Shown here in pieces: positions 9,900-42,569 of a stretch of 64,000 bases of DNA (its first letter is position 1; each line of letters opens with the position of its first letter). The DNA comes from Takakia lepidozioides (Eukaryota; Plantae; Bryophyta): assembly GCA_030704615.1 (NCBI GenBank), contig CM060733.1, positions 33,480,001 to 33,544,000 on the forward strand, in the 5' to 3' direction. A program made the position numbers and the translations under genes. The notes below the pieces were generated by a model, which did not search any database, was not told the origin of the DNA, and saw only the letters and a program-made list of their open reading frames with translations.

Positions 9900-10900
9900 T
9901 ATGCCTACATTGCTTGAGCTTTACCATTGCTCACTATATGCTGGGCATTTAGGCATTGATAAAATTGTCAAGAGACTCCAGGAAAAGTACCATTGGAAGG
10001 GGTTAACTAAGGATGTGGCAGATTTCATTTCTAAGTGTGTTTCATGTAAGTCCAAAACACTATTGTCTAGGACCATCGCTCCTTTTAAATTACAACTAAT
10101 TCCGGTGACTGAGATGTTTGCCCGAGTTGGTCTTGATCTTGTTGGACCCCTCAAAACTACGACTAAGGGCAATAGCTACATTGGTGTGGCTACTGATTAT
10201 CTGTCTAAGTGGGTTGAGATCCGACCATTGGTTGCTAAGGACAGTGACGAGGTGGTTCAATTCTTCTTTGATGAAATCCTGCTACGCCATGGTTGTCCCC
10301 TTAAATTTTAACTGATCAGGGTACGGAGTTTTGTAACCAGCTGATGGAGGTTGTGTGCTTTAATTTAGATGTCAAGCATCGCTTGACTGCTCCTTACAAC
10401 CCCCAGTGCAACAGGCTTACAGAGAGATTCAACAAAACCATGTGCCAGTTGTTAGAAAAGAACGGGGCTCTCACTAAAGAATGAGATGTTACTCTACCCA
10501 TTCTCATATTTGCCTACAGGACCTCGGTACATGCCAACACACGCTTTTCTCCTTTTGAATTATTGTATGGCCGCAAGGCTCGCACCCCTCTTCATGTCCC
10601 TATGCTTCAAACTCAGGTTGAGGAGCCCATCATATGAGAAGAATTTCTTACTCACCTCACTTCTCATCGTTTGGGTTTATTAGAGACGGCTAAACACAAC
10701 ATTCAGGTTTCTCAAGTTGCTCAGGCTAGAAATTATAACCATAGGGTTGTTTACTCTGAAATTTTTTCTCTAGGCCAGACTGTTTGTGTTTGGTTGCAGC
10801 CTGGCAAACATGTCACCAAGTCATGCGGATCGATGGGCCTTATTTGATTCATGCGATTTTGCCAAGTCGACAATACCGTCTCTTTCCTCAACATCCTTCT
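9900..10900 (+). pseudogene. Gypsy DDE integrase
   Basis: YHCSLYAGH...CVSC (HHCC), GLDLVGP, LTDQGTEF (after a frameshift at ~10305), NPQCNRLTERFN, DGPYLI. Confidence 0.9.
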
Positions 10901-12667: not shown

Positions 12668-14347
12668 ACTTCTGCTGCAAGAAAATTTGCATTCTGCTTG
12701 GTAATTTGCTGATGACGATTTCTGAGTATGAGGCGAGTGTTTCCCAGGCCAATGCCCATAGCTTGTCAAACTCTTCCTCAGGTTGCTCATAGATGTAAGG
12801 GGCGCCGAACGCTGAGAACAACCCAAGAAAGAGGAGCGTTTGAACCGAAAGCCGGCCAAAAAACTAGAGCACCCGCAACAGCAATATAACAACCTTGAAG
12901 AACAGAGTAAAATCCTTCCCCAGGACAATTTTTTCAAAATCTGATACGCCGGCGTTCCAAGCTGATCGCAATGCGACCGCTAGACGTTGAACAGTTTTTC
13001 AGAAATCTCCAACTTCGACTCCGATGAAGGTTTCGCAAGTGTGATTCCAAAACCTGGACTTGGAAAATAGCTGTAGGAGAAGACACCTAGCAGACCAACG
13101 AGAAGACTGTTTGCCAAAAAGAGAGAGCAAGGTGAAGCCAGATGTGAAGAAAAGGTAGATCCCCGTGACCAGCGAAACCAGAACCCCTAAACTCAGCTTG
13201 GCGTCTCGCCATAGCAGCACATCTGCTACTCTGTTGTTGCCAAGGAAAACATGCACCTTTGAAGAGCCTTTGAAATCCTTTCTCTCGGACTCGGGTTCTT
13301 CTGCTCGCAAGTGGGCAAATGAATCGATGGTGCGGCGGATACCCTCCTCAAGGGAAACCTGTGGAGTGTACCCCAGAAGCTTCGCAGCTCTCGAGCAGTT
13401 GAATTGTTCGGACCGTGGTCACTATCCGAAGTGCGATGGAGAGAACTGGGACGGCCGCACTCCCAATGGAGACAGCTGCTTTGTGATCCACTCGACAATG
13501 TAGGCAAGCGGCATGATCACCGCGATTGGGAGATGGTACTTAGGTCCTGGATAGCCAAGGCCCCCAACCATTTTAGAAACGAATACCCAGAACTTAATCG
13601 GTTCACAGTTGGTGATAAAAAAGCCTTTTCCAGATGCAACATCGTCACCAGGAAGCGTCCAGGAATCAGAGCTTGCTCAGCACATACCTGCTCGTGTGCC
13701 ACATTTTCCACGTATGTCCAATAAAAAAGATTCTCCCCGTCGCCTATTATGAACTTCAGTTTGCCGGCTTTCGCATTGGACACAAATGCAGGGATAGTTA
13801 ATCTGTCTCCAGGGCCGAAGATACCACTCGGCCGCAAGGCGGGAGTCCATGTTTCCCATTGGCAGCCAGTACCAATGCCTCCGCATGGGCCCTGGTATCC
13901 GAATAGAAATCGTTGTGTTTGTCAGGAATCGGAAGAGATTCGTCGCCATTGACAATGCCATGAACACCGTCAAATACAACACTAGGGGAGCTGGTGTGGA
14001 CGAGCTTGGTGACACCGCACTCCCAACAATCCTCAATCACATTGCGCGTGCCTACAACAGTCACATCATAATGGAGCTTGAAATTGTTGATGGACGAATC
14101 TGGGGCTGCCATGTGAAACACCACTGCCACTCCTTCCAAAGCCCGCACAACCTGCACCTTTTTTCTCAGATCTGCACACATATATGTACTGCGCTCGTCC
14201 AGTGGCCAAAGCACGGCTAAGAGGCCCTTCTTCGTCTCCGGGAGACATATCAAGTTGTGGTGCCAGGTCTATAATCCTCACAGCGAACCGCCCTCTCTCC
14301 AGCAGCTTCAGCACCACGTGACGGGCTGCGAAGCCCTGCCCCCCTTC
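12668..14347 (-). pseudogene. Intronless 3-beta-hydroxysteroid dehydrogenase/C4-decarboxylase with C-terminal reticulon domain (processed pseudogene)
   Basis: GxGFAARHVV, VFHMAAPDSSINNFKLHY, HTSSPSVVFDG, LRPSGIFGPGD, TYVENVAH, then reticulon VADVLLWRD. Contiguous with no introns; several frameshifts. Confidence 0.85.
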
Positions 14348-14608
14348 GCAGAAGAGAGTTGCTAGCTTGCTTAGTTTCTCTCTTCCGTCCTGCTTCCTTC
14401 ATTTCGTGCTCTTCCTATACTCGTTTCTAAGCCTCCTTGCCTCCAAGGTTGTTTTTCCTTGCACCTCCAATTCATTTTTAAGGGCCTCTGTCCTGTTTGT
14501 TTCAAAAACAAAAAGAATGAGGGCTTCTATCCCCTCTTCAAAAAGTATGTAAAAAATATTTGTTTGTAGGCCAAACGGTTCTATGAGTCATGGTTTGGTG
14601 TCGCTGCC

Positions 14609-17600
14609 TTAAGTCCATCTCTCTAGTTTCAACTCTGTCAACTGCGTGATTGACTCTGGCAACTCAAAATCCTCCAGCCCCAACACGAGTGTTTTGAGCC
14701 GTGTAAGCTTGCCCATACACTCTGGTAACCTCACCCACACATCTTTGTTTAGGTAAGATGTCAACTGCAATGTCTCCAGCTTGGTGAGTTGAGCGATGCC
14801 CTCCGGGAAACTCACAACAACCTCACACCCCTCCTCCACGTCAATCATCAACTTGAGCGATTGTAAACCTTTGAGTTGGTCAACTATTCATAGAATTCAT
14901 TGGAATCAAGCATGGTTTTGATACACTGCCTGTAACCACGGATACAGTCTGTGAGTTGTTGAACCTGCCCAAGATCAGTCACGTGTAGCTCTTGCAACCG
15001 TGTGAGTCGGGCAACAGACTTGGGTAATCTGCCTGGAGGTAGCGTAAGCCATCGCAATGTTGTCATCTCGCCCACCCACGACCACATCGCTAACCGGTCA
15101 CAACTAAACATGTTAAGCGACTCCAACTCAGTGAGTTTGGTGATGGACTCCGGCAGCTTCTCCAGCCTGTCACAATTTGTCAAATCGAGTGATTTCAAGC
15201 CGCTAAGTTCGCCAATGGTCCAAGGCAATTCTAGAAGATGGCGACACTGCGACAAGTTCAGGTCTTGCAATTGTGCCAATAGGCCGATAGACTGCGGTAG
15301 TCTTTGCAGGCTCTCCATCCATTCAAGGTGAAGTTGTTGGACACCTGTCAACTGTCCCAGGGACTCTGGCAAATTCTCAATCTTTTTACATGAAGACAAA
15401 TCCAGCCTTCGTATCGCTTTGAGATCTCCCACAGACTTTGGGACTTTTTCAAGAGAATGACACAATGCAAGTTGAGCACTTGCAATCCAGTGAACTTTCC
15501 AAGAGTCTTTGGTAATCTTTTGAGCCTATAGCACTTGTCCAAGTTCAACTCTCGTAAAGATATTAACTTCCCAAACTCAAATTCTGGGATACCTCCAACT
15601 TTTCACATCTTTGCAAATGCAATACACGCAATTCGGAAAGGTGGGTGATACTCGCTGGCAACTCCTTCACATCAGAACCTTCCAAAGAGAGCCATCTCAA
15701 CTGGCTGGAATGCCTCCGGAGGGAGTACTGCAAAGTTGATTGTGTGGTTCTCCTCAAGTCCAGCAAGCGAAGCTGCGGCATCTGGCAAATTCAGAAGTTG
15801 AATACTCCACACAAGATCCATCCAATGAAAGGCCTCGCACAGCTTCCGTCACCTGGAGATATAATTTGTCTGTAGAACAGTACTAAACAGCTGAAAATGA
15901 GAGGAGACATAATAAAGACAACACGAGAATTCAGATACATTGACATCCTGACATGCATAGACAAAGTTCAAAGTCAAACCTGTTTGTGTTGAAGCAAATT
16001 TTCCACCATTTGCACCCTCCATAGCCGACTTTGACGTCCCGGCATGTCACCTGATTCTTCTACGACAATGTTTTGTCCCATGTCTCGCAACTGATCATGC
16101 ATGAACAATTCCCCCTCCTCCCCTACTTTCACAAGTGATCTTTCTTTTAGGTTTTCTAAGCCCAGGGTTGAATGTATGCGGCATACCGTTTCAAATTCCT
16201 TTATTTTTGGCCAATCATCCACGTGATGATAGTCAGCAAAGAAGCAAGCAATGTCCAGGAATGCTTCTTTCTCATCCTTGCACAAATCATCATAGCTAAT
16301 TTTTAAACGCTTTCATAGTGTATCATTGGCATCACCGCCCCACAAAGGCTGTGTTTTTTGCAAACGTTCCAAGGCCCCTTTCCATAAATTTTCATAATCT
16401 TTGGTTTTAAGGAATTTACCCATAACCTCAAGGCTCAATGGAAGCCCACCGCAAGCCGCCACTACGTCCTCTAAGAGTCTCCCCAACCTTGTCCTCCGGG
16501 GGTCTTCCTTTGTAAAAGCATGTAAGCTAAACAACTGCATTGCATCCTCCGGGTTTAGGAACGGCATGTCGAACATCCCACTCTCACCCAAATGGCTGCT
16601 TCGGCTTGTCACAATCACTTTGCTGCCACTTTGGTCAAGTTCGTTGGGTGTCTGCATGAGCAATGCTTTGAGCTGCTCCTCGCTGTCAGCATCATCCACA
16701 ACGACGAGAATCTTTTCCCCTGCAAGCTCTCTCTCAAGAATGTGTTGACGGTGCTCAAAACTTCCAATGAAGTAGTCGTCGAGTTGAGGACACAAGTCCC
16801 GCAAAAGCTGCTTTTGGACCTCAACAAGTTCCCTTGTTCTCACATCTTGTAAGAAGCTACATGCATTGAAATCCTCGTGCATGAGATGGTATAGCTCCTT
16901 CACCAATGTCGTCTTACCAATTCCACCCATGCCAACTATACCAAGAATTGGAAATTTCTTGAGTTTCTGCCGTACACTAGCACTGCATTCAGATAGTCCG
17001 ACCATGTTGTGTGTTGGGCGTGATGGTAGTCTTGCACGGCTGATGGAATTGGCCTGCCAAACGTTGTGGTAGCCGAATGAGTGCACATGTGGAAGTTTGA
17101 GCAACATAAGCACATGTTGAACATGACTACAAACTTACACCCAGTGACATGAAGGTCCCAAACATCCTACTATCAAGCAAATATCGTGGCCCATAGCCAC
17201 AAGGGAACAATGACTAAGATTCACTCCAAGATCCAAAACCACTGTAAAGGACCTTCCATCTAGAGAAAGGGGGGACAATGTGCTAGCACTACTGAGCTTG
17301 CTGCAAGCATGGATGCAGTACAAAGTTCTCAATAATGTTCAGCACTATGGGAATTGTCTAGTTACAGTAAGTACATCACTAATACCAGTCACAACTTGCA
17401 GTTTCAAAAGGCTTCAAAGGAGCAACATGAGCAGTTCATCCAATACATCAGAAGAAATCTATACATGTGTCTGGTGGAGGCTGTGTAGTTTGCTGTCCAT
17501 CTCTATTAACATGATCAAAACAATCATTTACACCACGATCTAAAGATCCTACCTCATCACGACATGTTCGTAGGAATTGCAAGAGCTGTTGGTAGCTTTC

Positions 17601-26898: not shown

Positions 26899-28366
26899 CC
26901 AGTCCCGGCCAGTCCACCCAACAGTGTGCCCGCCAGTCCACGGCCCATGAGTTCGCTTTCCTCCAGTCCACTGATAATGCCGCATCTGGACCGTCCGTTC
27001 GCAAATGCCATCTGAGCCCTCCATTTTTAGGGCATGAATTGAAACCTTATCTCTGCCGCCTGCCACTTGCCAGCAGCCGCGAACGTGTGCACTGATGCTC
27101 CTTGCACGTTGTCCATCGTGTCCAGTGTATTGCGGCACGTTTCTTGCAGGTTCTAAAGCGTGTCCTCTGTATTGTACAAGGCATGGACGTGGAAGTAGAA
27201 GGTGATGATATACTAAAAACGGGATGCTGGATTATACGGCCTCTTCGACAAAGTTTGCAAACACCCAAACCAGGACCCTTCAACAGGAAGGACCTCCAAT
27301 GGAAGAGAGACACGCCATATGGTTATATGGGTGCCAGACAGAATGTTCTGAAGGCCTGCATACCGTGGGATAAAGTTGACGACTTTCTCCTTGGAGATGA
27401 AAGTTTGGTGGACTACCTCACTCAGTTTTGGGTGAATGTCCATACTAAAGTGCAACCCGACATGCTAAAAGAGCCGAGAGCTAGCAGTTCTCTGAACAGT
27501 ATCATGTGTGCTCCATCCTCATCGTCCTTTTGTAGTCTGATTGCATGTCTGTTGCCATTTTTCGTACCCACGTTCTGTGATTTCATGCTTCCAGAAGTCG
27601 ATGGATATCCATTGTGATTTTTATGTCTAGGTATCAATGCTGCTATGGTCCTGATGACAAACGCACCAACAATGCGATAGTGGAGGATCCAAAACTGAAA
27701 ATGACCTCTTTTGGGTGCTGGAACATCTCACCCTCATAAAAGCCCAAAGAGAAAGAAGTCAGAATATGGAGAGTCTTACAAGCATGGTTGCCAATGCTGT
27801 TTCAAGGTCCAGCAATGCTATCTCGCCCCCGACATTTGTGTCCTCACGTACTACAACAATATGAAGCATATAGACGCGAAAGAGAACCCATGTCATGGGA
27901 AGTCTGTTGAGTTCAGGAACACTCGCCACGCCTACGCACCACACATTAGCGAGGAATTGAAAGCATGGGTCATGGAGTGTCTGTGCCGAGGCCTGTCAGT
28001 CGCCCAAATCATGATGGAACATAAAGAGCACGTCATGAACAACACTGGGTTGGGGGATGCATGGGCACGGGATGATTTTTTGCTAGAGCAGGATGTGCGC
28101 AACCTGGTCGAGAAACGGGCGTGGCAAACGTTCAAAAAACATGCCAACGATGCGGAGAGTGTCCGCATGTGGAAAGACCAGAACCCGAAATCGGTCTTCT
28201 TCTATCAAGAGGAAAAATTGGCGCCAACATTCAAGCACTACGATGGCGACTTAACATTCACAATCGGCATACAGACTGAGTGGCAGAAGAAGCGAATGCT
28301 TCAATTAGGCCATGCACGTATCGTTTCAACCTTCGGGACAAATCACCACAAGGCACTCTTCATCCC

Positions 28367-28682
28367 TGTCAAGTTATTTTACCACTAGTGTGAAACTAGC
28401 TAGGAAATAGCTAGCTTTTACATATTGACATTTGGGATTGGCCCAAGTGTCAATCCAGGGGTCAAGGCAGATTTAGGCCCTGGAGTGGTTATCTTCACGG
28501 CAAGCCCGGGAGGCTCATCTTTCTCGAGTTGAGCCTCACCGCGCATAGCTATGGCGCCGTAGTGTGGATTCCCCATGGCGTGGGGTGCACTTGGCTTGAC
28601 TTGTATTTGAATGATAAGATTATATATGCATGAGTTTATGCTTCAGATTTGTGAGCTCGTGCTTGTATTCTTCTTCTTTATC
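28367..28682 (+). repeat. Repeat A1 (5' terminal)
   Basis: Direct copy of 39450-39754; about 7 substitutions and one 11-nt indel by eye. Confidence 0.95.
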
Positions 28683-29364
28683 ACTCGAGAAAAATGAGTT
28701 CGTATCTGTGAGTGCCAGATACGAGTTAGTTGTAGCACTTGTGGTTTTTGCTTGAGAATGAGAGAAACCAGGTTGTTATGCAAAGAGCACCGTGGAGCTC
28801 TTGGTTGTTAGAAGCGGAGGCGATGTGGGTTACGAGGTGGTAGACCTTGGCATTCGATCTTCAGCTTCAGAGATGAAAGCACCATGCTGCAGGTAATTCC
28901 AGAGCACCTTGATGGTTTCAGATTGTGTACATGAATGAGCAAGCACGATTGGGAAGAGGACCAGTCAAGAGCATGTTATAGTGGCTTTGGTGGAAAACCT
29001 GAGAACTGGACTTGGGAATGCGAGCTTTCATTGTGTGAAGGATTGCAAGACCAAGCGAAAGGGCTGATTTGGCTTGGGGCAAATCAGTGCACTTTGTGGA
29101 GTATGTTGAGATTGGGTTTCAATCTCGAGCTTCAGCATTGAGAGGGCTCTTGTCATGGCAAGAGCAGGGCTGGAACAGGAGCTAAGAGGTGCGGCAAGGC
29201 CATGGAATGTGCACCTAGGGTTTCAGAGCTTGGAAGAAGAGCTCTTGCACCACAAGAGGAGTGTCTTGTGGCTGGAAATGTAAGCCTTAGGGTTTCAAGA
29301 GCTTGACAAGGGCTGTGGAGTGCTTAGTCTTGTCTTAGAGAGCATCAAGGAGCTAAGGAGCCAA

Positions 29365-29830
29365 GATAGGGGGCTGATACCTCTTGTGTGAAGAGGTTGC
29401 ATGTGTGGAGCATGTATTCAGCTCATTGAAGCTTCCATCTTCAAGCTTGGAGGGCAAGCAAGGAAGAGGGAAGGGCTGACTTCCCTTATGTGAGAGTAAT
29501 GCATGTGTGGAGCATGCTTTCAGCCTGATGAAGGCTTGTACTTTCAGGTTTGGGAGTGCAAGAAATGAAGGAAAGGGCTGGTTTCCCTGTAGGGCATGTG
29601 TGGAGCATGCTTCCAACCCGCTGAAGCGTGTATTTTCAGGTTGGTGGGTGCAAGAAAGAAAGCAAAGGGGCTGATTCTCTGGTGGTGAGAGTGGGGCATG
29701 TGTGGAGCATGCCTTCAGTCCATTGGGCTTTTGTTTTCAAGCTTTAGAGAACTAGAAGAGAAGGTAAGGGGCTGATCTGCTCTTATGTGACAGTCCGACA
29801 CTTGTAGAGCGTGTTTTGAGTTGGGGTTTC
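29365..29830 (+). repeat. Degenerate ~100-bp tandem repeat in the retroelement leader
   Basis: GCATGTGTGGAGCATG at ~29399, 29501, 29594 and 29696, each with a preceding GGGCTG motif. Confidence 0.75.
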
Positions 29831-30221
29831 AACCTCAAGCCTAGATAGAGCATGGCTCTTGAAGTGGCAGGTGTAGGGGGCTGGAATAGGCTCTAAGACA
29901 GATGCTATGGCCAAGGGAAACGCTTGAATGAGTGCTCACAAGGGCTGGAAACCAGCAAGGCTTGGTTGTTTGCCATTGAGTTTAGTGGCGTGTTTGGGGA
30001 GTCTAAGTGAGAAAGAAGGCTTGGTTTGTGGCAACCATCTTCCTCATGGCTTAGGGCTACTATTGGTGGTGTATGGGAGCCAAAAGAGCAAGAATACCTT
30101 GCTGTTTTCTTCACAGCCGCCATAGCTCGGTGCAAAGAAGCCTAGAGTCCAAGAGACACAAACCCTAGCGTGGCGTGGCTAAACCCCTTGGAGAAATGGC
30201 TAAACTGCCATGAGTGACCAT

Positions 30222-31080
30222 GGATGGGCTGTGAGGGGCTGTGACAGGCTGTGCCCTGTGGCCTATGGGGCTATGACGGGCTGTGACAGGCTGTGAGGGG
30301 CTGTGAGGGGCTATGACAGGCTGTGCCCTGTGGCCTATGGGGCTGTGATGGGTTGTGACAGGCTATGACAGGTTGTGGCCTTTGGGGCTGTGACCCCTCT
30401 GACCTGTGTAGGGCTGTGACGGGCTGTGACAGGCTGTGCCCTATGGCCTGTGGGGCTGTGAGGGGCTGTGACAGGCTGTGCCCTGTGGCCTGTGGGGCTG
30501 TGACGGGCTGTGAGGGGGGCTGTGACAGGCTGTTGCGGGCTGGGACAGGCTGTGCCCTGTGGCCTGTGGGGCTGTGACGGGCTGTGATGGGCTATGAGGG
30601 GCTGTGACAGGCTGTGGCAAGCTGTGACGGGCTGTGAGGGGTGACAGGCTGTGCCCAGTGGCCTGTGGGCTGTGAGGGCTGTGAGGGGCTGTGACAGGCT
30701 GTGCCCTGTGGCCTGTGGGGCTGTGACGGGCTATGAGGGGTTGTGACAGGCTGTGGCCTGTGGCTTGTGGGGCTGTGACGGGCTGTGACGGGCTTGATAG
30801 GCTGTGGCGAGCTGTGACAGGCTGTGATGGGCCGTGTGGGGCTGTGGCGGGCTGGGACAGGCTGTGGCCTATGGCCTGTGGGCCTGTGAGGGGCTGTGAC
30901 AGGCTGTGACCTGTGGCCGTGGGGCTGTGACGGGCTGTGATAGGCTGCGGCCTGTGGGGCTGTGACCCTGTGACCTGTGTAGGGCTGTGACGGCTGTGAC
31001 CAGTGAGTTGTGTGGGCCTGTGCTGGTCTGTGGTGCCCGTGTTGACCTGTGGACGGCCTGTGCTGACTCGTGGAGGCACT
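30222..31080 (+). repeat. GGCTGTGA/CAGGCTGTG minisatellite in the retroelement leader
   Basis: Dozens of same-strand GGCTGTG(A/G/C) units. Confidence 0.95.
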
Positions 31081-31899
31081 GGTGGACTGCCTAAGGACTG
31101 GCATGTGGTCTTGAAGGCCGAATTTTGAAGCTCGTGGAGGGCGGTTTGAGGAGTATCTCCATGATATTCCCATGGTCATGCAAGTGAGGGAAGAGAGGAG
31201 AGGAAGAGTGTTGGGATGAGGGCATGCTGGGGTTAGGCATTGCTTTAGCTTCTCTTCCTCGTAGTTTCCACCCTCTCATTAGGCCAAGACCTTTCCGTAG
31301 GTGGAGGCAAGAGTCAGTCTGGGTTTGGGCTGGGGTGTTCTTGCAAGAACAACACCGTGGAGTTATTTTTGGTGTGGGGGAGTTGTCGTTCTGATTTCTT
31401 GTGTTTGGATCCCCTCCATACCTGCATGCTTGACTGTGCGCCATGCTAGTTTTGTGTGGGCGCTTGTTTTTATAGGTGATTGGTCCGATTTGATCACCGG
31501 CCAGTCCTAGAGCATGCTATCGATGGTGAGGCTGGGGTGATGACCAGCCAGACCATCATTGTTTCTCCTGTGGTGAGGTTGGAGGTGATGACCAGCCGGT
31601 GGATGCAGGTACAGGTGTAGGCTATGTTAGGAACTTAGTATTCCAAACCATAAGCCGCAACAGGTTCTCTACCCGGTTACCTTGTGGAGAGGGGGTTAGG
31701 GACATGTTCATGACCGGTTGAGTGTCAACACGGAGGTGCCACTAGTTGCTGGGGACAGTGCTGGTTCGAGCACTAGCGATACTAGTGGGTACACGAAACG
31801 AGGTGTGCGGTTTAGGCCACCTTCACTTCCCGTGTCTTCTACGGAAGGTTCTAATTCGGATTGTGAATTAGGAGGACTCATACCGGCGGTGCAAGTTGT

Positions 31900-33160
31900 T
31901 TCCTTGCCATTGTTGTGGGACACAATGGAGGAGATGTATGGAGCTACCAAGGGGCAACGAAGGTACTCTGGGGCGGTGGGCACCATTGAGTTGGATGATT
32001 TTATCCAATAGTTTGATAGTTGGTGTGATTTGCATCAAATGCGCAATCCACAACTATTTACGCCTTTCATGGCATGGAAGGGGCTGTTTCAGCACCTTGA
32101 GGGGCCGCCTATGGATGATTACCATGAGTTTAGGCGGGGGCATGAGGTTGAGATCAAGGAGTGGAGGATGTACTGATCACCCGACTATGTCTCCATCACT
32201 AGCGGCACTAGAGTCACGAGGGTAGTGGCTACACCTGTCGCTGCACCGGCAACTTCAGCAAGCAGCAGTGGGACTAGTAGGACTGGTGGTACCGTAGATA
32301 CAATGTCCACCCAAGCCACTACCGCACCAGCACCAGTACCTGTGCTTGCCTTCAACCCTGTTGTGGAGTTCTTCGAAGAGTTGAGATGGAACTACCAAGG
32401 GGTGAGGACAGAGAAGTTGCGGAGCTTGTAAGAGTTCCAACGGAAGCCTACTGAGAGCTTGAGGGAGGCTTTCACTCGCATGAGGCGCTTGATAAATGTA
32501 ACCCAAGGGGTTACGGAAGCTCAGGCAGTCCAATTCTGGTATGGGATATTGGACAAGGAGCTGAGGAGAAGGGTGCGGGATGCAACTCTCCTACAAGCGG
32601 CCCAACCCACCTTAGCAAATGTGTTTTTGTTGGCAGAGCGGATAGAGCTCAACACGGTGGAGGAACGAGTGGTCATGGTGGGATTTGCTAAGGAGACACC
32701 ACAGGGTAGTGGTGCTCCTAGCCAACCACTACCTCAACGTGCTCAAGGCAACAAGGGGGCTCAGGTGAAGCTCAGGGAAGGGCAGAGAGGACCTCAGATG
32801 CACGGGTCTCTCCCTTCATTTGCAGACCAACAACGGGCGGATGTGGTGTGTTGGACATGTGGAGGACCCCACGTCAAGAAGGATTGTCCAGAGGGAGGCA
32901 AAGGGCCGGCACATGCACAACCTGCACAGTTGCAGTGTGGGCATTGTGGCAAGCACGGGCATGGAGAGGCCCAGTGTTATGGTTTGTATCCCGAGTTGCG
33001 CCCAGGCCAATTCCAAGGGAACAATGGTGGCTGGGGGCGAGGGGGAGCAGCCCAAAGAGGACGAGGTGACCAGGCACGGGGTGTAGGCCAATGGCAAGCT
33101 CAACATGGCCAAGGACACGGAGGTCAGGGTGTTGACCAAGGCATGGCCATCCGGCTTTAG
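31900..33160 (+). pseudogene. gag: gag of the DNMT retroelement with two zinc knuckles
   Basis: ELDDFIQ*FDSW, FQRKPTESLREAFTRM, CWTCGGPHVKKDC and CGHCGKHGHGEAQC; in-frame stops. Confidence 0.8.
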
Positions 33161-33849
33161 CAGCTAGAGCAGAGGCTCACTGCCATGGCTACAACTCATG
33201 TGGTACCGGCTCCAAGGCCGGATAGTCCACCTCCTGCTCCTGAGGGAGGAGATATAGGAGGCATGGGATTCATGTGCGGAGCAGCACTACCACTAGTGCA
33301 GGTGGAGTCTGCTGCAGCCGTGACTCGAGGAGCAGCACGAGTTCCTGAGCCACGAGGTGCAGAGGTGGAGTTGGATCCACAGCGTGGGGAGGCAAGCCGT
33401 CAGGCTAGGCTCCCTCAGTCATTCACATTGGCGGAGACAGTGTCGACGCCATCCATGGCACCTAGTTCTCGTCCGACTGTTACCGAGGCGGAGGTTACTA
33501 TGCCATTGGGGAGAGCTACACGGGTAGCACCACTACCTAGTGTTGCCAAGGCTACGGCAGCTAGTGTGCTGCTGGGAGCGGCCACATCTGTGTATCAGGC
33601 TCCATTGTTCTTGGCTACCATGATTGCGACGCCGGGGGTAAGACCAGCTGAGGTGTTCAGGCTGGCAGCTACACTCTGTGAGAGTAGGGAGGTTATTTCA
33701 TCTTCTGCAGAGATAGTGGGAGGTGTAGTGCCGGAGGGATCCTCGGATTTGAGGGTCAAGACTGCCACGGCGGCGCCATGGCAAGCTGCAGTTGCCAGGT
33801 TGATAGAGCTGCCAGCTAGGTCATCCATTGAGCGCACCATGGTTATACC

Positions 33850-34260
33850 TAGAGTTGTCATGTTAGACAACCAGGATGGCATTTTTTGTTTGAGTGGACC
33901 GACAGGCAAGAGGTACCGGCCACTGCGGGTCTTGTTGGACTCGGGAGCTCAGCCATTGATGCTGGGCAGAGCTGCTATTGCAGGCTTGGGCCTCACGGAG
34001 GCGGATATGGAGCCTTGTCCTTTCCAGATACATATGTCTCTAGGAGGATCAGAGCAGGCTCGGGGCATGACACGACATGAGTTGGCTATCAGACTACAGC
34101 CGGATCATCCTACAAATGGCTCAGTGATGAGAGCCAAGGCTATTGTGACAGACGCGGTCTTGTACGATGTCCTTGTTGGTGGGGCAGTGTTGTACCTCAT
34201 GGGCTTCACCCTGGATTTTTGGGAGGAGTCAGCTTCCTATAGGCCCGGATGGCAGTCAGG
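33850..34260 (+). pseudogene. Retropepsin domain
   Basis: RVLLDSGAQ and YDVLVGG within ORF 33185..34645. Confidence 0.8.
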
Positions 34261-34640
34261 GGAGGGTCGGCGCGTGCAGCTCCCTTTGACGTTCATAGGA
34301 GGAGTTGCGGTTGCCCAGCGAGGCAAGATGCCGACACTAGCAGCATTCACAGCGGCAGTGAGTTGGCCTGGAGAGTTGCTTGAAGGCAACGCTCATTCAG
34401 AGGATGTGCCACCTTCGGGAGAGCAGGATGACATGTATGGTATGATGGAGTTGCCTAATATGGTTGCTCAGACTCCATTGTGGGGCACGAGCAAGGATTT
34501 GCAGCGGGATGCTGATCGACGGGTGCAACAAGCCTGGGTGGAGGTTTTTGTACCGTCAGGAGAGGAGGAGAGTGCGGATTGCACCAGGATCACCTCAGTT
34601 GTCTCCATTGGGTACCACACCTATTGTGTGGCAGTATCCG

Positions 34641-35580
34641 GATGAAGGCATTTGTCTTCTGGACTTGTTTGGCGGGATCAGCACCGGATTGGCTACTGTG
34701 TTACAGGCAAGTGTACAAGTTCAGCGTTACCTGTATGTGGAGAGGGATGATACTGCACGACGCGTTTCACTTCGTCATGTTGCTCAGTTGGTACAGCAGT
34801 ACCCTGAGTTGTTGCCGGTGTCTGCAGTTCGTGGATATCAGCAGGCCTTGCCAGCAGACATTTCGTTGCTGGGGGCGCAGGATTTGGAGCGGGTTGGTTC
34901 CATTGATCTGGTAGTGGCAGGTTGGCCCTGCCAAGGGCATTCATCAGCCGGGCATGGCAATGGATTGCGAAACTCGAGGTCAGGTCTGTTTTGGGAGATG
35001 GTGCGGGTTTTGCGCCACTTGCAGCTTCATCAAGCTGTATCTCCAGCATACATCTTGGAGAATGTGCCACTGATGGGCGATTCTTGGGCCAGGGTGATGG
35101 CCAGTGTGCATCAAGTCCGGTCGTGGCTTGGATCAGCAGTGTTGCTAGATGCAGCTACAGTGCTCATCGTCCACGGCTATGTTGGACTAACTTGATGCCA
35201 CCCGCACTGCTCAAGCGTGCATTTGATGGGGTGCAGCGGCCAGCACATCTCACAGTGGATAGCATTCTGGACACAGGGAGGCAGTCTCAGCGTGTGAGAC
35301 ACGATGACCGTTCGCCTTTGGCAGTGGTCAACAAGGTGGGTCAACCACGAGCAACATTACCTACACTGCTCAGCTTCCCAGGATCGCATGCTTTCCGGGA
35401 TAGTGGACCTGGCCTCCTGTGGGATGCTCAGTTGCAGCAGTTAGTGGAGCCTAATGCTGACGAGCGTGAGCGGGCAATGGGTTTTACCACTGGTACCACG
35501 TCGGTGTCGTCTCTTTCTGAGGCATCACGTCGTCAGGTGTTGGGGCAAGCAATGGATCTCAATTGCTTGACCTGGATTAT
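34641..35580 (+). pseudogene. C5-cytosine DNA methyltransferase domain embedded in pol
   Basis: Motif I LDLFGGISTG, II YVERD, III ADI, IV AGWPCQGHSSAG, VI LENV, VIII AHRPRLCWTN, IX EPNADERERAMGF, X RQVLGQAMD, in canonical order; one frameshift at ~35160. Confidence 0.92.
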
Positions 35581-35989
35581 CAGCTTGGCTATGGCTGAGC
35601 AACGCAGAGTGCGGAGAACACTTCCCTATGGTCTCTCTGCCTACCGAGACGGTACAGGCAGTGAGTGGGGGCGAGCATGTGAGGACCACGGGGTGCAGGC
35701 ATCCATGGCACACGTGGGGGGTGCTCGAGGTTCAGAGGGAGTTGGCAGCCAAGGTGGCGGTGATAGATGAGGTTGGGGATTTTTCTCGGGTGGAGGAAGT
35801 CCTTGAGGATGAGATGATGGGGCAGGATGAGGCCTTGTCATTGACTGAGCGGTAGGGAGTACTGCTCAAGAGGTTGCAACATAGCAACCACTGGACGCGT
35901 CCTCTACCTCTAAGCCCACTGGACTTAAGGTTGCAGTTACGGAGGACAATTGGGAGCCTGACATTGGACCCATTGTCACCGGAGGAGAG

Positions 35990-37360
35990 AGACGATATAT
36001 GGCGGTTCCTGAGGGCTTACAGGAATTGCTTTGCCTTCAGTTTGAAGGACTTGGGAGCACTGAAGGGTCAAGAGATCCGTATTGAGTTGGCCACTGACAC
36101 GCCAATCTTTCGGAGACCCTATAGATACAGTGACATGGAGAGATCTTTGATTCAGATGAGGACTCAAGATCTCTGGGAGGCAGGTTTGGTGGAGCTCTCT
36201 GGTGGAGAGTATGCTTCAGCCACAGTGATGCCAGCCAAGAAGGATGTCTATGGCAATTGGACGGAGAGACGTATGTGGGGTGATTACCGGCCTGTAAATC
36301 GTCAGACCAAGTCCGATAAGTATGCCATGCCAACACCAGAGGAGATCTTTGATGCCATCGGGCATGCTAAGGTCTTTAGCACTTTGGATTTACGATCCGG
36401 ATATACTAATCAAGGAGGCGGACAAGCAGAAGACGACATTCTGGGGGATCAATGAGCACGGCAAGGATTGCCTATATCAGTGGCGGTTCTTACCATTTGG
36501 GCTTAAGAATGCTCCTGCAGAGTTTCAGAGAGTCATGGATAGGATTCTAGCAGGGGTGGACTTTGCTCGGTGCTACATAGATGACATCATCATCTTTAGT
36601 GTTACGGTGGAGGAGCATGAGAGACACCTTCAGGTGGTATTGGAGCGCTTGAGAGCGCACGGATTGAAGTTGCATCCGGGGAAGTGCAAGTTTTTCCACA
36701 ACCAGATTGAGTATCTGGGTCACATGATATATCCTGGAGGATTGGGGGTACAGCAGACTAAGGTAGAGGCCATTGCACAAATTCCACGCCCCACGGATGT
36801 GAGCCGAGTTCGAGCTTTCATGGGGTTGGCAAACTATTATAGACGGTTTGTCAAGGGATTTAGTACTATTGCAAAGGCTCTAACCAAGCTGACCAAGGTG
36901 GACCAGGAGTGGCAGTGGGAAGATGAGCAGGAACGAAATTTTCAAGAGCTCAAGGCGAGGTTGACCTCGGCGCCTATCCTGAGACGACTGGGCGTCCCTT
37001 TCAGCTGCATACGGATTGGAGCATGCTGGGGCTTGGAGCGGTGCTCACACAGGTGGATGATGAGGGAAGAGAGTTCGTAGTGGCTTATGCTAGCCGCTCG
37101 AACAACGCTGCAGAAGCTAAGTACAGCTCATATGAAGGAGAGTGCTTAGCTGCAGTGTGGGCCGTGGCACACTTCAGGTGCTATCTATACGACAATCTTT
37201 TCACCCTTGTCACGGATCACCAGCCACTCAAGTGGTTGATGGAGTCAGACAAGCTTACGGGGAAGCTTGCACGGTGGGCACTCATACTCCAGGAGTATGA
37301 CTTTCAGTTGTGCATCGACCGGGTTTGGTCAATCGGGATGCGGATGGATTGAGTCGCAAT
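35990..37360 (+). pseudogene. pol: Reverse transcriptase and RNase H
   Basis: GDYRPVN, LDLRSGY, LPFGLKNAPAEFQR, CYIDD, FMGLANYYRRF, HTDWS, ECLAAVW, TDHQPL; frameshifts. Confidence 0.95.
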
Positions 37361-37749
37361 CCATGCACGAGCCAGCAGGATGACACTGGAGCTCGGTGGC
37401 ATGGTGAGACGGACGAGGAGATGGTGCCGGGATGGCACGCATCTGCATTTTTGTGTATCTTGGCATCGGGAGGTCAGGTTGGACCTACAACATGGATGAC
37501 TGTAGACGGAGTGTCTGAGGACCCTGAGGCTAGTGATGAGCCAGGTGGTGCCAGAGATATACATGAGGATTCGGCTGTGTTGGACTACCTCCGCACGGGA
37601 GACACGGCAGCCACTGTGACTGCCAGGGAGAGGGATCGGATCCTGCAACGAGCCAAGAGGTTCAAGTGGGAGGGGATACACCTACTTCGAGTGTGGGAGG
37701 ATGGTCGAGTGAGGATTGTGCCTCACCCCACACAGCGTGCACGGTTAGT

Positions 37750-39000
37750 GCGGCATGCCCATGAGGAGTTGGGGCATTTTGGAGTGCGACGCACTCACAG
37801 TTTACTGCAGGGGCAGTATTGGTGGCGTGGTATGCATACAGAGGTGCAACAGTTCGTGGTTAGGTGCATGGTGTGTGACAGGGTGCGTGCTTCATTCAAC
37901 GCCCCTACACCACAGTTGCATCTTTTACCAATCATGGGATTGGGCTACAGGTGGAGTCTTGACTTCGCAGGACCGTTGCCACTGACTATGCGCCACCACA
38001 GATATGTGTTGGTGATGGTGGAGCACTTCTCCAAGTGGATTGAGTTGGTTCCATTGCCTGACAAGGCTAGTGAGGGGGCTGCGTATGCATTCTTGGATCG
38101 TGTGCTTAGCCATTTGGTGCTCCAGCTGAGGTACTCACGGACCAAGGGAGAGAGTTCTTGGGGGAGTTTCAGGCTTTGTGTGATAAAGCCTTGATAGACC
38201 ACCGCACCACTTCTCGGGATCATCCTGAGGCCGATGGCTTGGCAGAGAGAGTTGTTCAGACGGTGAAGAGGGATTTGTGCAAGTATGGCTTGCAGAAGGG
38301 ACACCTAGGAGATTGGGATCTTCAGGTTCCTTGGTTAGCCATGGGCTACAGGTTCAGCAAACAAGCATCACTTGCCTCCTTCTCACCATATTTCCTTCTC
38401 TTTGGCCGAGAGCCGGATTTGCCTACAGCCATTCGTAGGGACACTGCTCAAGTCCTTAACCTTGACGATTCGGACGTGTGGGTACGTGCATGTATTCAGC
38501 GTGCAGAGTTGTTCAAGAAAGTCATGCCCATGGCTTTTGAGAACCTTGCCATTGCACAACACTGTGATACGTTGAGGTATGCCACTATACGTGGTGGAGG
38601 ATATCGTCTTGGGGTTCGGAGGTTTAGCCCTGGTGACTATGTTTATTTGCAGCAGACTGCTTCTACGACTCTGGATGTTACTGCAGGGCGTGTTATTTTG
38701 AGGGTTCGAGAGGTGTTGCCCTCAAGGGTCTTGATCTTGGAGGGTCGGGATGGCATGACTTGGAAGGACCATGTGCGTAATTGTGCGCCATATCACCTTC
38801 CCAATGTCGATGGCAGAGTTCACCCAAACTTGGCAGTGGTACCTGCAGGTTTGAGGTGCATGCTCTGTGGGTCTGCCAAAGGGGCAGCCACCATGCTGGT
38901 GTGTGATCGATGCTCAAGGGGTTGGCATATGGGATGCTTGACTCCACCTCTTGAGAAGGTTCCTGACGGAGATTGGTTGTGTCCACACTGCTTGGGATAG
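37750..39000 (+). pseudogene. DDE integrase with C-terminal PHD finger
   Basis: HEELGH...CMVC, SLDFAGP, LTDQGREF, ADGLAER; PHD CMLC..MLVCDRCSRGWHMGCLTPPLEKVPDGDWLCPHC (C4HC3). Confidence 0.93.
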
Positions 39001-39258
39001 TGGCAGTGGACATGACTGGAGGCAGCTAACAAGACATGGGAGGCCAAGCTCATAGGAGTCAATACATGAGATCCCAAGCTCAAGTTCACAGGTTGCAAGA
39101 CGGCGACTAACGATGGGGCAACTCTTGCACCCGACCTCTTGATCTATCGAGTTTGAGTGTAGTAGGGATAGTGGTGGAGGACTTAGTGAGGCTATGGTCA
39201 GTATCACATCTTGTGGCTACCTGGACTTAGAGGGACCTAAGCACTAGCTAGGGGGACG

Positions 39259-39447
39259 ATTGTGTGGACTAGTGACTGCCATAGTGGGCAGTATAGTGGC
39301 AGCCTAGTGACTGACTAGTTGTAGCCTAGTGGTTGGACTAGTGGCTGGACTAGTGGTGGACTAGTGATATACTAGTGTGTGGCGTGCACATGTGTTGTGT
39401 GGTTTTGGACAGCGATGTAGTGTGTAGCGATATGTATGCGCATGACA
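39259..39447 (+). repeat. Repeat B1 (internal)
   Basis: Direct copy of 39756-39945 (about 3 substitutions, 1 indel); rich in ACTAGT/TAGTGG. Confidence 0.95.
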
Positions 39448-39449
39448 GC

Positions 39450-39754
39450 TGTCAAGTTATTTTACCACTAGTGTGAAACTAGCTAGGAAATAGCTAGCTT
39501 TTACATATTGACATTTGGGATTGGCCCAAGTGTCAATCCAGGGGTCAAGGCAGATTTAGGCCCTGGAGTGGTTATCTTCACGGCAAGCGCGGGAGGCTCA
39601 TCGAGCCTCACCGCGCCTAGCTATGGCGCCGTAGTGTGGATTCCCCATGGCGTGGGGTGCACTTTGCTTGACTTGTATTTGAGTGATGAGGTTATATATG
39701 CATGAGTTTATGCTTCAGATTTGTGAGCTCGTGCTTGTATTATTCTTCTTTATC
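39450..39754 (+). repeat. Repeat A2
   Basis: Copy of A1, joined to B1 by the dinucleotide GC. Confidence 0.95.
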
Positions 39755-39755
39755 T

Positions 39756-39945
39756 ATTGTGTGGACTAGTGACTGCCATAGTGGGCAGCATAGTGGCAGC
39801 CTAGTGACTGACTAGTTGTAGCCTAGTGGTTGGACTAGTGGCTGGACTAGTGGTGGACTAGTGATATACTAGTGTGTGGTGTGCACATGTGTTGTGTGGT
39901 TTTGGACAGCGATGTAGTTGTGTAGCGATATGTATGCGCACGACA
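39756..39945 (+). repeat. Repeat B2 (3' terminal)
   Basis: Copy of B1; ends GACA followed by the TSD TCCC. Confidence 0.95.
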
Positions 39946-40494
39946 TCCCTTTCACAATTTATCCACTTGCAGAAGTAGTGGATGTACGCACACTGGCAGC
40001 ATCTGACATTCTGCATTTGAACAGTTCCCATTGTACACGTTGATGGTCTTCGACGAGTGGCTTAACGGTATACCAGTTGCGTACATCATATGCGCGCGTG
40101 AGCGGACAGCAGACATGGTGCCGTGGATGGCAGCCTTGCGGGACTCTCTCCTCGCAGAAATGCCGGACTGGCGACCCAATGCCTTCATTGTGGACGATGC
40201 CGACGCCGAAATAAACGCCATTACGTAAGTTTCATGTACCCTCCTGTACACTCGCGTGCAAGTCCGTCGTCTGCTTCCATTGTCTGTCTCTTCGGCAAGT
40301 CCCCTGCCATACAACGCAGTCTTGGCTGCAAGTCCGGCCCATTCATTTCTGCAAGTCTCCTGACAAATCAGTCCGCTGGTAATGTCCTCTAGCGAAGTCC
40401 GCTGGAAGACTCACTTGCGCAAGTACGCTGCAAGGTCAGTCTGCTCGGGTGTGCTGCCAGCAATGTTTGGGTAAGTCTGTTGCCGGTCTCCTAA

Positions 40495-40995
40495 GGGCAA
40501 GTCCGCTGGCAGACCAGTCCGCCGGAGGGGACTGTTCGCAAGCAGTCCGCTGCAAGACTCACGTGCGCCAGTTTGCTGCGACCTCAGTCTGGTCCAGCAA
40601 GTCCGCTGGCAAGCAGGTCCACCGGAGGGGACTGTTCGCAAGCAGTCCGTTGCAAAACTCACGTGCGCCAGTTTGTTGCGACCTCAGTCTGGTCGAGCAA
40701 GTCCGCTCGCAGGCGAGTCCGCCGGATGGAACTGTTTGCAAGCAGTCTGCTGCAAGACTCACGTGCGCCAGTCTACTGCGACCTCACTCTGGTCCAGCAA
40801 GTCCGCTGGTAGGCAGGTCCGCCGGAGGGGACTGTTCGCAAGCAGTCCGCTGCAAGACTCACGTGCGCCAGTCTACTGCGACCTCACTCTGGTCCGCTGG
40901 CAGACGAGTCCGCCGGAGGGGACTGTTCGGAAGTCTGCTGGCAACCCAGTCCGGTCGGGATGCCCTCTGGCCAAGTCCGTTGCAAGACTCACTTA
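40495..40995 (+). repeat. 100-bp tandem repeat (~5 copies) in a MULE transposase intron
   Basis: GTCCGCT(G/C)G at 40501, 40601, 40701, 40801 and ~40892. Confidence 0.9.
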
Positions 40996-42569
40996 CGTAA
41001 GTCCACTGCGAGGTCAGCGTGGTCACGTTTGCTGGCAGTGTCGTGAGGGCAACACTCATGGCAGGTCAGAGTGGGCGAGTCTGCTGCCTGAACAAATCCG
41101 TTTGGAACAAACGGGCAGACTAGTCAACTAGACAGTCTACTGGGTTAGTGCCCAAATCCACCGGCAAGTCCTCTTTGAAGTCTCTCATGTGGGCATGTGT
41201 ACTTTGCAGGGCTGTTTTTTGAGGAGTGCTAATTTTCCTGTGCCTTTGGCATGTCCGGCGGGCTTGGATGAAGCAATCATGCACGAAAACCAAAGATCCT
41301 ATCACTGCCGCAAACTTGCTGAAAGATATGGGAGACCTCATGTACTGTAGAGGTGGACCAATCAATCCCAAAGAAGGTCTTGCATGGGTAGCAACAACGC
41401 TCCGACGCATGAGAAAGAAATATCCGAATGGGCATGAATTTCTGGACTACATCGATAAGGAATGGCGTCCTAAAATAGCAATGTGGTGTACAGCAGCTTG
41501 CCATGTTCCGCATGCTAGTCAAGACACCAATGCTAGCATTGAGGCATACCATGGAAACTTGAAGGCAAGACTGAGGATGGGGAAAGGCAAATGACTGGGC
41601 GTAGAGTGGATTGGCTCATATGGGAACTCACAGGCCGTGTGCTAACACACTACTGGTATGCAATTCACCTAAAGACGCACGGATTCATAAGGAATGTCAA
41701 ACAGGAGAAGTACATGTCCAGTTCTGTGCTTGCGGCACGCGATATCCCAGCTTGCAATGTCACTCTTCCGTTCTATCCTAGGCAACCAGCCTATGTTCTA
41801 AGCACCAATCACCCAAACACAATTTACATTGTTTACAACCCCGGATGCGAATGGGCTTCTTGCACTTGCCCATGGGCAATGAAGGGCAATTTGTGCAAGC
41901 ATCAAGTCCGAGTCCTGAAGTTGCTTCATCCACACTTGCAGGATGGACTCATAGTGCGCGCTTGTGGCACGGCGCTGGGAACCATTCATGGAGGATTGCA
42001 TAATGTGTTTAGGGTTCATGCAAGTGTCGGCGACGAAGAGGGTTTGGGAAATGCAACAGAGGGCCCTTCCACAGATGACTTCCCCTATGATGCAGAGCCT
42101 ATCCTCGTACCATCCTCCATGGATGAAGAATTTGCAGACATACTTCGCATTGTTGGGGACGACAAATACCTGCAGAAACATGTGTTGTCTTCTCTTCGTA
42201 TCTGTAGGGGGCAGCTTGTTGATATTCTCGCCAAGAGTGCTACAAGAATGCTGCACCCTGCGGCAGCAAAGAACTTCCGTCCTGTAAATGACAACAACAA
42301 TATGTCGCTGAAAAGGAAACGAGATTTTGTTGAGGCATGGAAAACGCGACCCAGGGTCTTACACAAAACAGGGAAGAAGGTTGGTGCCCCAACACCTGTA
42401 GCACACATATACTCCACAATCCGGAGAGTCACAGACCGTATACCAGTTTTAAAGTAGAGTAGGAAATGTAAGAAATGGTACAGTATCATTCTCCCCATGA
42501 AATAAAATTTCGGTGGTACGATTGCATGTGCACCAGACGTCCAACCTGCCTGCCAACCAGCCTGGTAAA

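Follow-up and report, generated by a model that had tools for sequence, protein, structure and literature searches.

The stretch of DNA analysed here, referred to below as the window, comprises 64,000 nucleotides of the Takakia lepidozioides genome (assembly GCA_030704615.1, contig CM060733.1, positions 33,480,001 to 33,544,000). Positions 28367-39945 of its forward strand are occupied by a single 11.6-kb retroelement, a dead copy of a Ty3/Gypsy-type retrotransposon of the streptophyte 'Gypsy-DNMT3' kind, sitting in a bryophyte genome. The element carries gag, protease (PR), a C5 DNA methyltransferase (DNMT), reverse transcriptase (RT), RNase H (RH), integrase (IN), and a PHD finger, and is framed by split direct repeats in the order A1...B1-A2-B2. 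We hold this identity and anatomy with high confidence. The explanation that we favor as a whole adds to them a circular replication intermediate, self-methylation of the new cDNA, and PHD-guided integration; taken together, we assign it a probability of about 0.65, and the added parts are put forward below with more caution.

Borders and split repeats of the element

The element starts with TGTCAAG at 28367 and ends with CGACA at 39945, giving it TG...CA termini, and both ends are flanked by the same four bases. A single 4-bp duplication of this kind has chance odds of about 1/256; the architecture recurs in two further genomes, each time with a 4-bp duplication of its own. The borders and repeats are as follows:

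28363-28366 (no strand), left target-site duplication TCCC, 4 bp identical to 39946-39949
28367-28682 (+), repeat A1, starting with TGTCAAG, an integrase-type left end; matches A2
39259-39447 (+), repeat B1, ending with GACA; 97.9% identical to B2
39450-39754 (+), repeat A2, without the 11 nt TTTCTCGAGTT present in A1
39756-39945 (+), repeat B2, ending with CGACA, an integrase-type right end
39946-39949 (no strand), right target-site duplication TCCC, 4 bp identical to 28363-28366

A1 and A2 differ by 7 substitutions over 305 aligned bases and by one 11-nt indel. One filler base, the T at 39755, separates A2 from B2, and no further copy of either repeat was found within the window. In the terms of reverse transcription, A1 is made up of the 3' part of U3, followed by R and U5. 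The PR-RT-RH-IN order, the HHCC finger and DDE (rve) integrase, the TG...CA ends, the 4-bp target-site duplication, and a primer-binding site (PBS) and polypurine tract (PPT) adjoining the repeats are all those of a Ty3/Gypsy element. The two equal long terminal repeats (LTRs) of an ordinary Ty3/Gypsy element are not found; the 5' end is formed by A1, the 3' end by B1-A2-B2.

A first-pass annotation of this DNA had proposed the same domain order in one orientation, the split repeats, and the 4-bp duplication, in a decayed copy whose repeats differ by about 2%. All of these features were recovered in their proposed positions, the repeat divergence agrees with the estimate for both A and B, and the decay is borne out by the lesions described in the following section.

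A decayed gag-pol polyprotein

Pfam searches identified, on the + strand, a C-5 DNA methylase (DNA_methylase, E 8.5e-12), RVT_1 (E 7e-25), RT_RNaseH (E 2.6e-32), Integrase_H2C2 (E 1e-15), rve, and PHD (E 4.5e-11). The motifs that can still be read include the CCHC knuckle of gag, LLDSGA of the protease, DNMT motifs I, IV (GWPCQ), VI (ENV), IX and X, YIDD of the reverse transcriptase, the HHCC finger of the integrase, and eight of eight zinc ligands of the PHD finger. Natural intact relatives, among them the polyproteins P0049 and P0179, served as coding references for the decayed window copy. The leader and the coding region comprise the following features:

28693-31699 (+), long non-coding leader with tandem repeats (Tandem Repeats Finder; open reading frames (ORFs) of the leader without Pfam match)
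29387-29718, in the leader, 102-bp tandem unit, 3.3 copies
30226-31074, in the leader, 10-bp tandem unit GGGCTGTGAC, about 80 copies
31700-33157 (+), gag in one frame, CCHC knuckle at 32936-32977 (translation; aligns with the N-terminal region of P0179)
33161-34642 (+), aspartic protease region, LLDSGA at 33932-33949 (aligns with the Asp_protease_2 parts of P0049 and P0179)
34596-35650 (+), DNMT3-like C5 cytosine methyltransferase (Pfam PF00145, E 8.5e-12), frameshift near 35150; motifs starting at 34662 (I), 34920 (IV, GWPCQ), 35052 (VI, ENV), 35465 (IX), and 35537 (X)
35856-37077 (+), reverse transcriptase, YIDD at 36574 (Pfam RVT_1); two frames, frameshift near 36405
36927-37349 (+), RNase H (Pfam RT_RNaseH)
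37301-38856 (+), integrase, HHCC finger at 37754-37876, then the rve core (Pfam); frameshift near 38110
38857-38991 (+), PHD finger of the C4HC3 type with every ligand preserved, at the extreme C-terminal end of pol (Pfam); stop codon at 38998

The coding region is collinear with residues 188-2344 of P0179, an intact protein of 2358 aa from an environmental contig, in nine pieces with seven frame changes. It is further interrupted by at least five in-frame stops, at 32009, 32174, 32429, 33158, and 35853. The first three of these break gag, which is conserved at the protein level in three liverwort loci (L006, L007, and L008). Twelve lesions in 7.3 kb correspond roughly to about 1% neutral decay per copy, and the window copy may therefore have been intact at insertion. 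Among the database matches there was no intact liverwort copy. These domains once belonged to a single gag-pol polyprotein, which ran from gag with its CCHC knuckle through PR, a complete and non-permuted DNMT3-like domain, RT, and RNase H to a DDE integrase, with the PHD finger at its C-terminus.

Related copies in liverworts and green algae

The closest relatives of the window DNMT, at 63-70% identity, are short proteins of Calypogeia fissa (GCA_965154635.1) and Marchantia polymorpha subsp. ruderalis (OAE22373.1). The three liverwort loci are collinear decayed copies with 65-75% nucleotide identity to the window element. More specifically, L008 (Calypogeia) contains gag, PR, and DNMT, then RT, RH, IN, and PHD, with a 4.5-kb insertion inside the DNMT and with PR and DNMT in the same frame; L007 (Marchantia) contains gag, PR, DNMT, and the integrase N-terminus; and L006 (Calypogeia) contains gag, PR, DNMT, and the start of RT. 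In both L008 and L007, the repeats follow the A1...B1A2B2 order, the ends are TG...CA, and a separate 4-bp duplication flanks the copy (CATC in L008, ACAT in L007). A Closterium locus (L036) displays B1-palindrome-A2-B2; its A1 falls within a run of N, where the 5' end and the target duplication are illegible. The transposon DNMT fragments of L006, L008, and L007 are deposited as protein-coding genes ('unnamed protein product', 'hypothetical protein AXG93_2318s1200').

Intact relatives are single ORFs of 2188-2358 aa, in which P0179 reads PR-DNMT-RT-RH-IN-PHD and P0177 and P0049 read gag-PR-DNMT-RT-RH-IN. A second architecture, RT-RH-DNMT-IN-PHD, is common in chlorophytes, for example in Scenedesmus and Monoraphidium. 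PHD fingers are present in 36 of the 56 polyproteins that share the DNMT. Two checks that the first-pass annotation had called for thus have positive outcomes: the DNMT sits in the same position in the other copies, and a single polyprotein ORF, sought through natural relatives, is found intact and with the same domain order in P0179, P0177, and P0049.

Comparison of the window with the three liverwort copies by the Nei-Gojobori method gave ratios of nonsynonymous to synonymous divergence (dN/dS) of 0.16-0.27 for the DNMT. For the window and liverwort copies, the ratio was 0.07-0.12 over the integrase, 0.09 over the C-terminal part of the integrase together with the PHD, and 0.03 over RNase H; all of these are rough values because dS is saturated (>1). 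By these ratios, the DNMT evolves under purifying selection, and so does the PHD. A quick maximum-likelihood tree built from 165 N-terminal halves of the DNMT (IQ-TREE, SH-aLRT support) places the liverwort copies in one clade with a support of 100. This clade lies on the 'DNMT before RT' side of a supported split (95), together with every other element of that arrangement in the tree, including a 16-row clade composed entirely of Closterium. As a whole, the family has been retained in Calypogeia and in Marchantia, and intact relatives of it occur in Closterium and in environmental green algae.

The methyltransferase, the PHD finger and their possible role

Among solved structures, the N-terminal half of the window DNMT matches only DNMT3A/3B and plant DRM chains at E<=0.001 (best DNMT3A, E 9e-6, then DRM and DNMT3B), with neither DNMT1 nor bacterial enzymes among the matches at that threshold. 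The motifs follow each other in the non-permuted order I, IV, VI, IX, X. In an alignment of 62 relatives, the catalytic cysteine (GW-x-CQ), ENV, the motif VIII arginines, and the S-adenosylmethionine (SAM)-binding motifs are invariant. An AlphaFold model of the DNMT domain of P0179, an algal relative 42% identical to the window DNMT, reached a pLDDT of 93.5, and its top 50 Foldseek hits were all DNMT3A/B/C (E about 5e-19, TM 0.84, normalised by target). Judged by its sequence and predicted fold, the enzyme is DNMT3-like.

A Pfam search of the window and of the intact relatives revealed neither a PWWP nor an ADD domain adjoining the DNMT. The PHD finger lies about 1000 residues away from the DNMT, on the integrase, and is conserved in L008 and in algal relatives, with all eight zinc ligands intact in both the window and Calypogeia. 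Its closest solved relatives are CHD4, KDM5A/B PHD1, ATXR5, PHF21A, BAZ2A/B, UHRF1, and AIRE. PHD fingers of the CHD4/KDM5/PHF21A/AIRE class read the unmodified H3 tail (H3K4me0). In P0199 (Monoraphidium neglectum MNEG_11595, residues 2260-2407), a protein of the RT-RH-DNMT-IN type, a Tudor-like domain (PF21743) comes after the PHD and makes a second chromatin reader on the integrase.

In the role that we tentatively propose, the protease would free the DNMT3-like domain in the particle or the pre-integration complex, where the domain would methylate the new cDNA at CG, and the PHD finger would tether the integrase to non-promoter chromatin, as the chromodomain is presumed to do in chromoviruses. 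These are the weakest steps of the overall scheme, and we regard their combination as possible rather than probable. Self-methylation of cDNA was advanced as a hypothesis by de Mendoza 2018 (PMC5890265) for KnitGypsy-Dnmt3 of Klebsormidium nitens, an element with a Dnmt3-related domain in Gypsy pol and a Ka/Ks below 0.2.

The DNMT could also act otherwise: on RNA, in trans on host DNA (for example by mimicking gene-body CG methylation or by disturbing host silencing), or as a structural component of the particle. Purifying selection shows that the domain is useful and not what it is useful for, and the KnitGypsy DNMT produced no DNA methylation in yeast, a result that its authors call inconclusive (PMC5890265). 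The invariance of the catalytic cysteine, ENV, and SAM-binding motifs across the 62 relatives, however, speaks for retained catalysis on DNA, as does a fold that is that of the DNMT3 DNA methyltransferases; furthermore, a related DIRS-borne Dnmt3 methylates CG de novo (PMC5890265). We consider such other roles doubtful.

Putative priming site, polypurine tract and junction palindrome

The signals at the inner borders of the repeats are the following:

28520-28529 (+), self-primer motif TTTCTCGAGT, located within A1 and exactly reverse-complementary to 28683-28692
28683-28692 (+), ACTCGAGAAA, putative PBS for Tf1-like self-priming, immediately 3' of A1
39229-39258 (+), PPT-like motif AGAGGGACCT...AGCTAGGGGGACG, directly 5' of B1
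39444-39453 (no strand), 10-bp palindrome GACAGCTGTC (GACA-GC-TGTC), formed by the B1 end, the 2-nt spacer GC, and the A2 start

Read from the sequence, the PBS shows no complementarity to a tRNA 3' end and no TGG start. Its partner motif at 28520 is the proposed transcript start, that is, the start of R. The pairing between PBS and A is perfect over 10 nt in the window, 15 nt in L008, 12 nt in L007, and 24 nt in the algal locus L010, which encodes P0177; the sequences differ among these copies and the pairing is kept. RNAalifold predicts a 12-bp long-range helix with compensatory changes. These features argue for a Tf1-like self-priming set-up of reverse transcription. A PPT-like motif occupies the same place in L007 and L008, and G-rich tracts are located there in L010 and L036.

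The palindrome is identical at the B|A junction of the window, L008, L009 (the contig carrying P0179), L010, L013, L017, L029, L032, L035, and L036, and is degenerate in L007 (GACGACTGTC). It is shared by L029 and L035, which have the other DNMT architecture. A metagenome scan with the junction 19-mer returned 25 loci, of which only L013, L017, L029, L032, and L035 look related, the remainder being probably chance matches to the palindromic pattern. Split repeats were not found in L029 and L035, as expected if short-read contigs collapse repeats. The A2|B2 joint contains 0-2 filler bases in the window and its relatives.

Three further observations concern these regions. The 11 nt TTTCTCGAGTT found only in A1 (28520-28530, compared with 39602/39603 in A2) coincide exactly with the stretch that pairs with the self-priming site. 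A GAGGCTC/GAGCCTC hairpin holds them in its loop, and in the copies from Calypogeia and Marchantia both A repeats retain the motif. The difference may reflect a loop deletion after insertion or have been left behind by priming; self-priming was weighed as its cause and set aside, as such a difference does not follow from the standard scheme. Second, L009 (1-18357) is a perfect 8262-bp tandem or circular repeat with a single non-coding unit. This form could be DNA of an extrachromosomal circle, a tandem array, or an assembler wrap-around, and is compatible with a circular form. Third, the intact P0177 in L010 (8591-18801) is framed as A'-B-A-PBS-ORF-PPT-B-A-B-A', with an additional B on the left, a variant A' at either end, and TGTC (4 nt) duplicated at the left palindrome. 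Such a layout may represent an array, nesting, or an assembly artefact.

A possible circular route of replication

By the standard rules of reverse transcription, a PBS after A and a PPT before B would yield a linear cDNA with the terminal repeat B+A. Such a repeat is out of register with the integrated A...B ends by a shift of one B, which suggests a circular intermediate opened by integrase. Furthermore, the A2|B2 joint corresponds to a U5 end abutting a U3 start, as at the junction of an LTR-LTR circle, and the cDNA was therefore probably circularised. In the proposed route, the cDNA would first be circularised. The integrase would then cut 3' of CA on both strands of the palindrome beside the PBS-side repeat, creating recessed CA-3'OH ends, and the permuted molecule A-PBS-internal-PPT-B-A-B would be inserted with a 4-bp duplication. 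Only this form would keep the full downstream B+A repeat and be able to replicate again. The integrases of foamy virus and HIV-1 cleave the palindromic LTR-LTR junctions of 2-LTR circles (PMC1180852, PMC1905944). We consider the circular route plausible, at odds somewhat short of even.

The main rival to this route is a linear one, which assumes DIRS-like template switches in which B1-A2 serves as a bridging template, so that a linear A-internal-B-A-B cDNA would be made and integrated without a circle. The layout is formally that of split-direct-repeat elements, whose models use internal copies of the joined ends (PMC4157794), and template switching would explain why a single form is seen in three of three copies. 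The position of the PBS directly after A and of the PPT directly before B nevertheless predicts a B+A repeat, the A2|B2 joint with its 0-2 filler bases resembles an end-joined circle junction, and no primer site is evident beside B1|A2. For these reasons, we regard template switching as unlikely.

Several observations weigh against the combined explanation of a circular route, cDNA self-methylation, and PHD targeting. A 2-LTR circle with two palindromes should also give rise to A-B-A-internal-B insertions, and there were none in the three complete copies examined. The acidic stretch (GSPDDE-like) before the second PHD cysteine pair is kept in the algal relatives and lost in the liverwort PHDs, where the window and Calypogeia copies read GSAKGAAT and GSTSGATT, and H3K4me0 reading by the liverwort PHDs is uncertain as a result. 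The window as a whole has a CpG observed/expected ratio of about 0.54 and an excess of TpG+CpA, a pattern that fits a CG-methylated genome. The element itself has a ratio of 0.46 and the rest of the window 0.54; since depletion is no stronger in the element than in the rest of the window, it is uninformative on self-methylation. The yeast result for the KnitGypsy DNMT, the algal origin of the modelled domain, and the saturated dS belong to the same side. In addition, the likeness to KnitGypsy-Dnmt3 was drawn from its published description, and the nearest named algal relatives in our data are Closterium spp.

A wider proposal, which we offer as a speculation and hold to be doubtful, is that these elements form a DDE-integrase LTR lineage extending from green algae to liverworts with a DIRS-like cycle. 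An obligatory cDNA circle would be opened at a permanent palindromic att site, a DNMT3 writer and an H3-tail reader would set the chromatin state of the element itself, and some land-plant copies would still be mobile. If true, a circle opened at an internal palindrome would explain how split direct repeats occur alongside TG...CA ends and target duplications.

Less probable explanations

An algal or contaminant origin of the contig would be in keeping with the intact relatives from green algae and metagenomes, but it is very unlikely. Host gene fragments at 13798-17110 (-) comprise a 3-beta-HSD exon and, after it, parts of an NLR-type gene with leucine-rich repeat (LRR) and NB-ARC domains. 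The NB-ARC fragments and the LRR fragments, which are of plant type, lie at 14884-17110 (-), and the best named relatives of the NB-ARC domain are from Sphagnum (37-40% identity). The closest copies of the element are located in chromosome-scale liverwort assemblies with similar G+C, and the liverwort copies make up one DNMT clade. A human origin of the window is ruled out by its plant NLR and Dof-type content and its plant transposons. The land-plant host suspected in the first-pass annotation is accordingly upheld, by this gene and by the nearest relatives of the element in Calypogeia fissa and Marchantia polymorpha.

It is highly improbable that the split repeats arose in this copy only, through rearrangement, nested insertion, or misassembly of an ordinary LTR element. 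The 11-nt indel between A1 and A2 and the extra repeat units of the perhaps rearranged algal locus L010 could be taken that way. The A1...B1A2B2 layout, TG...CA ends, and separate 4-bp duplications are, however, found in three genomes, and B1-palindrome-A2-B2 in Closterium; moreover, the K. nitens family is described with DIRS-like repeats (PMC5890265). At the level of the family, this reading is refuted.

It is scarcely credible that the element is of DIRS/PAT/Ngaro type, mobilised by a tyrosine recombinase and carrying the DNMT in place of the DIRS methyltransferase. It is true that A1-B1-A2-B2 repeats are a hallmark of PAT, Ngaro, and VIPER (PMC4157794) and that DIRS elements carry a methyltransferase domain. 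Nevertheless, Pfam found no tyrosine recombinase in any ORF of the element or its leader, an HHCC and rve integrase is present, the TG...CA ends come with 4-bp target duplications, and the enzyme is a DNMT3-like C5 methyltransferase rather than the adenine-type domain of DIRS. Least probable of all is a one-off capture of a host DNMT fragment by a single Gypsy copy, or a chimeric or nested arrangement mimicking a fusion: the window copy is broken and its DNMT lies in a different frame from PR and RT, but the DNMT stands between PR and RT in L006, L008, and L007, shares one frame with PR in L008, is in frame within the intact ORFs, and has the dN/dS values given above, so that a single event is refuted by its shared position and by its place within the intact ORFs.

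Comparison with known systems

The element is best filed with Gypsy-DNMT3, a design already published as KnitGypsy-Dnmt3. Both have the Gypsy domain set, a non-rearranged Dnmt3-type domain in pol, DIRS-like repeats, purifying selection, and a streptophyte host; the Fig. 4c legend describes the repeats of KnitGypsy-Dnmt3 as 'the same as that of a DIRS retrotransposon' (PMC5890265). They differ in the land-plant host, and the DNMT between PR and RT and the PHD ending the integrase are features of the present element, in so far as the accessible description of KnitGypsy-Dnmt3 allows the comparison. The first-pass annotation had therefore overstated the novelty of the design (PMC5890265). Later papers refer to 'streptophytes (Gypsy-DNMT3)', and PHD fingers are a common accessory domain of Chlamydomonas transposons. 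New here are the extension of the host range to land plants (liverworts), the presence of the PHD throughout the clade, the candidate self-priming PBS with compensatory changes, and the conserved palindrome GACAGCTGTC. A partial literature search found no report of a DNMT-retrotransposon family in liverworts or any other land plant.

The A1...B1 A2 B2 layout with an internal copy of the joined ends is shared with PAT, Ngaro, and VIPER, which belong to the DIRS order. These elements use a tyrosine recombinase, whereas the present one relies on a DDE integrase and shows TG...CA ends with 4-bp duplications. To our knowledge, PAT, Ngaro, and VIPER make no target duplications. The predicted PBS, complementary to the element's own 5' transcript and not to a tRNA, is of the kind found in Tf1/Sushi and plant Tcn1, the latter representing self-priming in mosses and club-mosses (PMC6317226). 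Those elements have a chromodomain, ordinary LTRs, and no DNMT; the present element has a PHD, split repeats, and a DNMT. Similarly, chromoviruses carry a chromatin reader on the integrase C-terminus that is presumed to direct integration, which is a chromodomain there and a PHD of the CHD4/KDM5/BHC80 type here.

DNMT-carrying retrotransposons also include SymbioDIRS-Dnmt3 of dinoflagellates and the EpiLTRs (bioRxiv 10.64898/2026.05.21.726589), the latter with a chromatin reader as well. SymbioDIRS-Dnmt3 has a DIRS backbone, and the EpiLTRs have DNMT4-like and Dam-like enzymes and a chromodomain; these are independent acquisitions. With the 2-LTR circles of foamy virus and HIV-1, the element shares a palindrome of two ends (CA...TG), which in those viruses is cut by integrase into integration-competent ends (PMC1180852, PMC1905944). 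In the viral circles, the palindrome arises only after end joining, whereas here it is a permanent internal feature whose cleavage would follow from the proposed route.

With these findings, the known range of DNMT-carrying Gypsy elements, previously a charophyte alga, comes to include land plants, among them the model Marchantia polymorpha, and Closterium. Closterium belongs to the algal sister group of land plants. The wider host range makes the self-methylation idea testable in tractable plants. The family also makes concrete how a DDE-integrase element can have recombinase-type split repeats, with the PBS, PPT, A|B joint, and palindrome together providing a checkable model. LTR finders that need two equal terminal repeats would miss or mis-annotate it.

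Other features of the window

Rfam gave no match in the window, and an exact look-up of one window ORF returned no record. An ORF of 336 aa at 55882-56889 (+) encodes a Dof zinc finger (E 8.5e-8), and a large protein search returned no relatives of it at E<=0.001. A second Ty3/Gypsy-like element at 6840-10311 (+) contains a dUTPase domain (PF00692, E 1.5e-7) upstream of its RT and integrase. Just 3' of the Gypsy-DNMT3 element, a 100-bp tandem repeat extends over 40497-40895 in four copies with 89% matches. It is followed at 41591-42454 by an ORF with a SWIM zinc finger, possibly from a MULE-type transposase.

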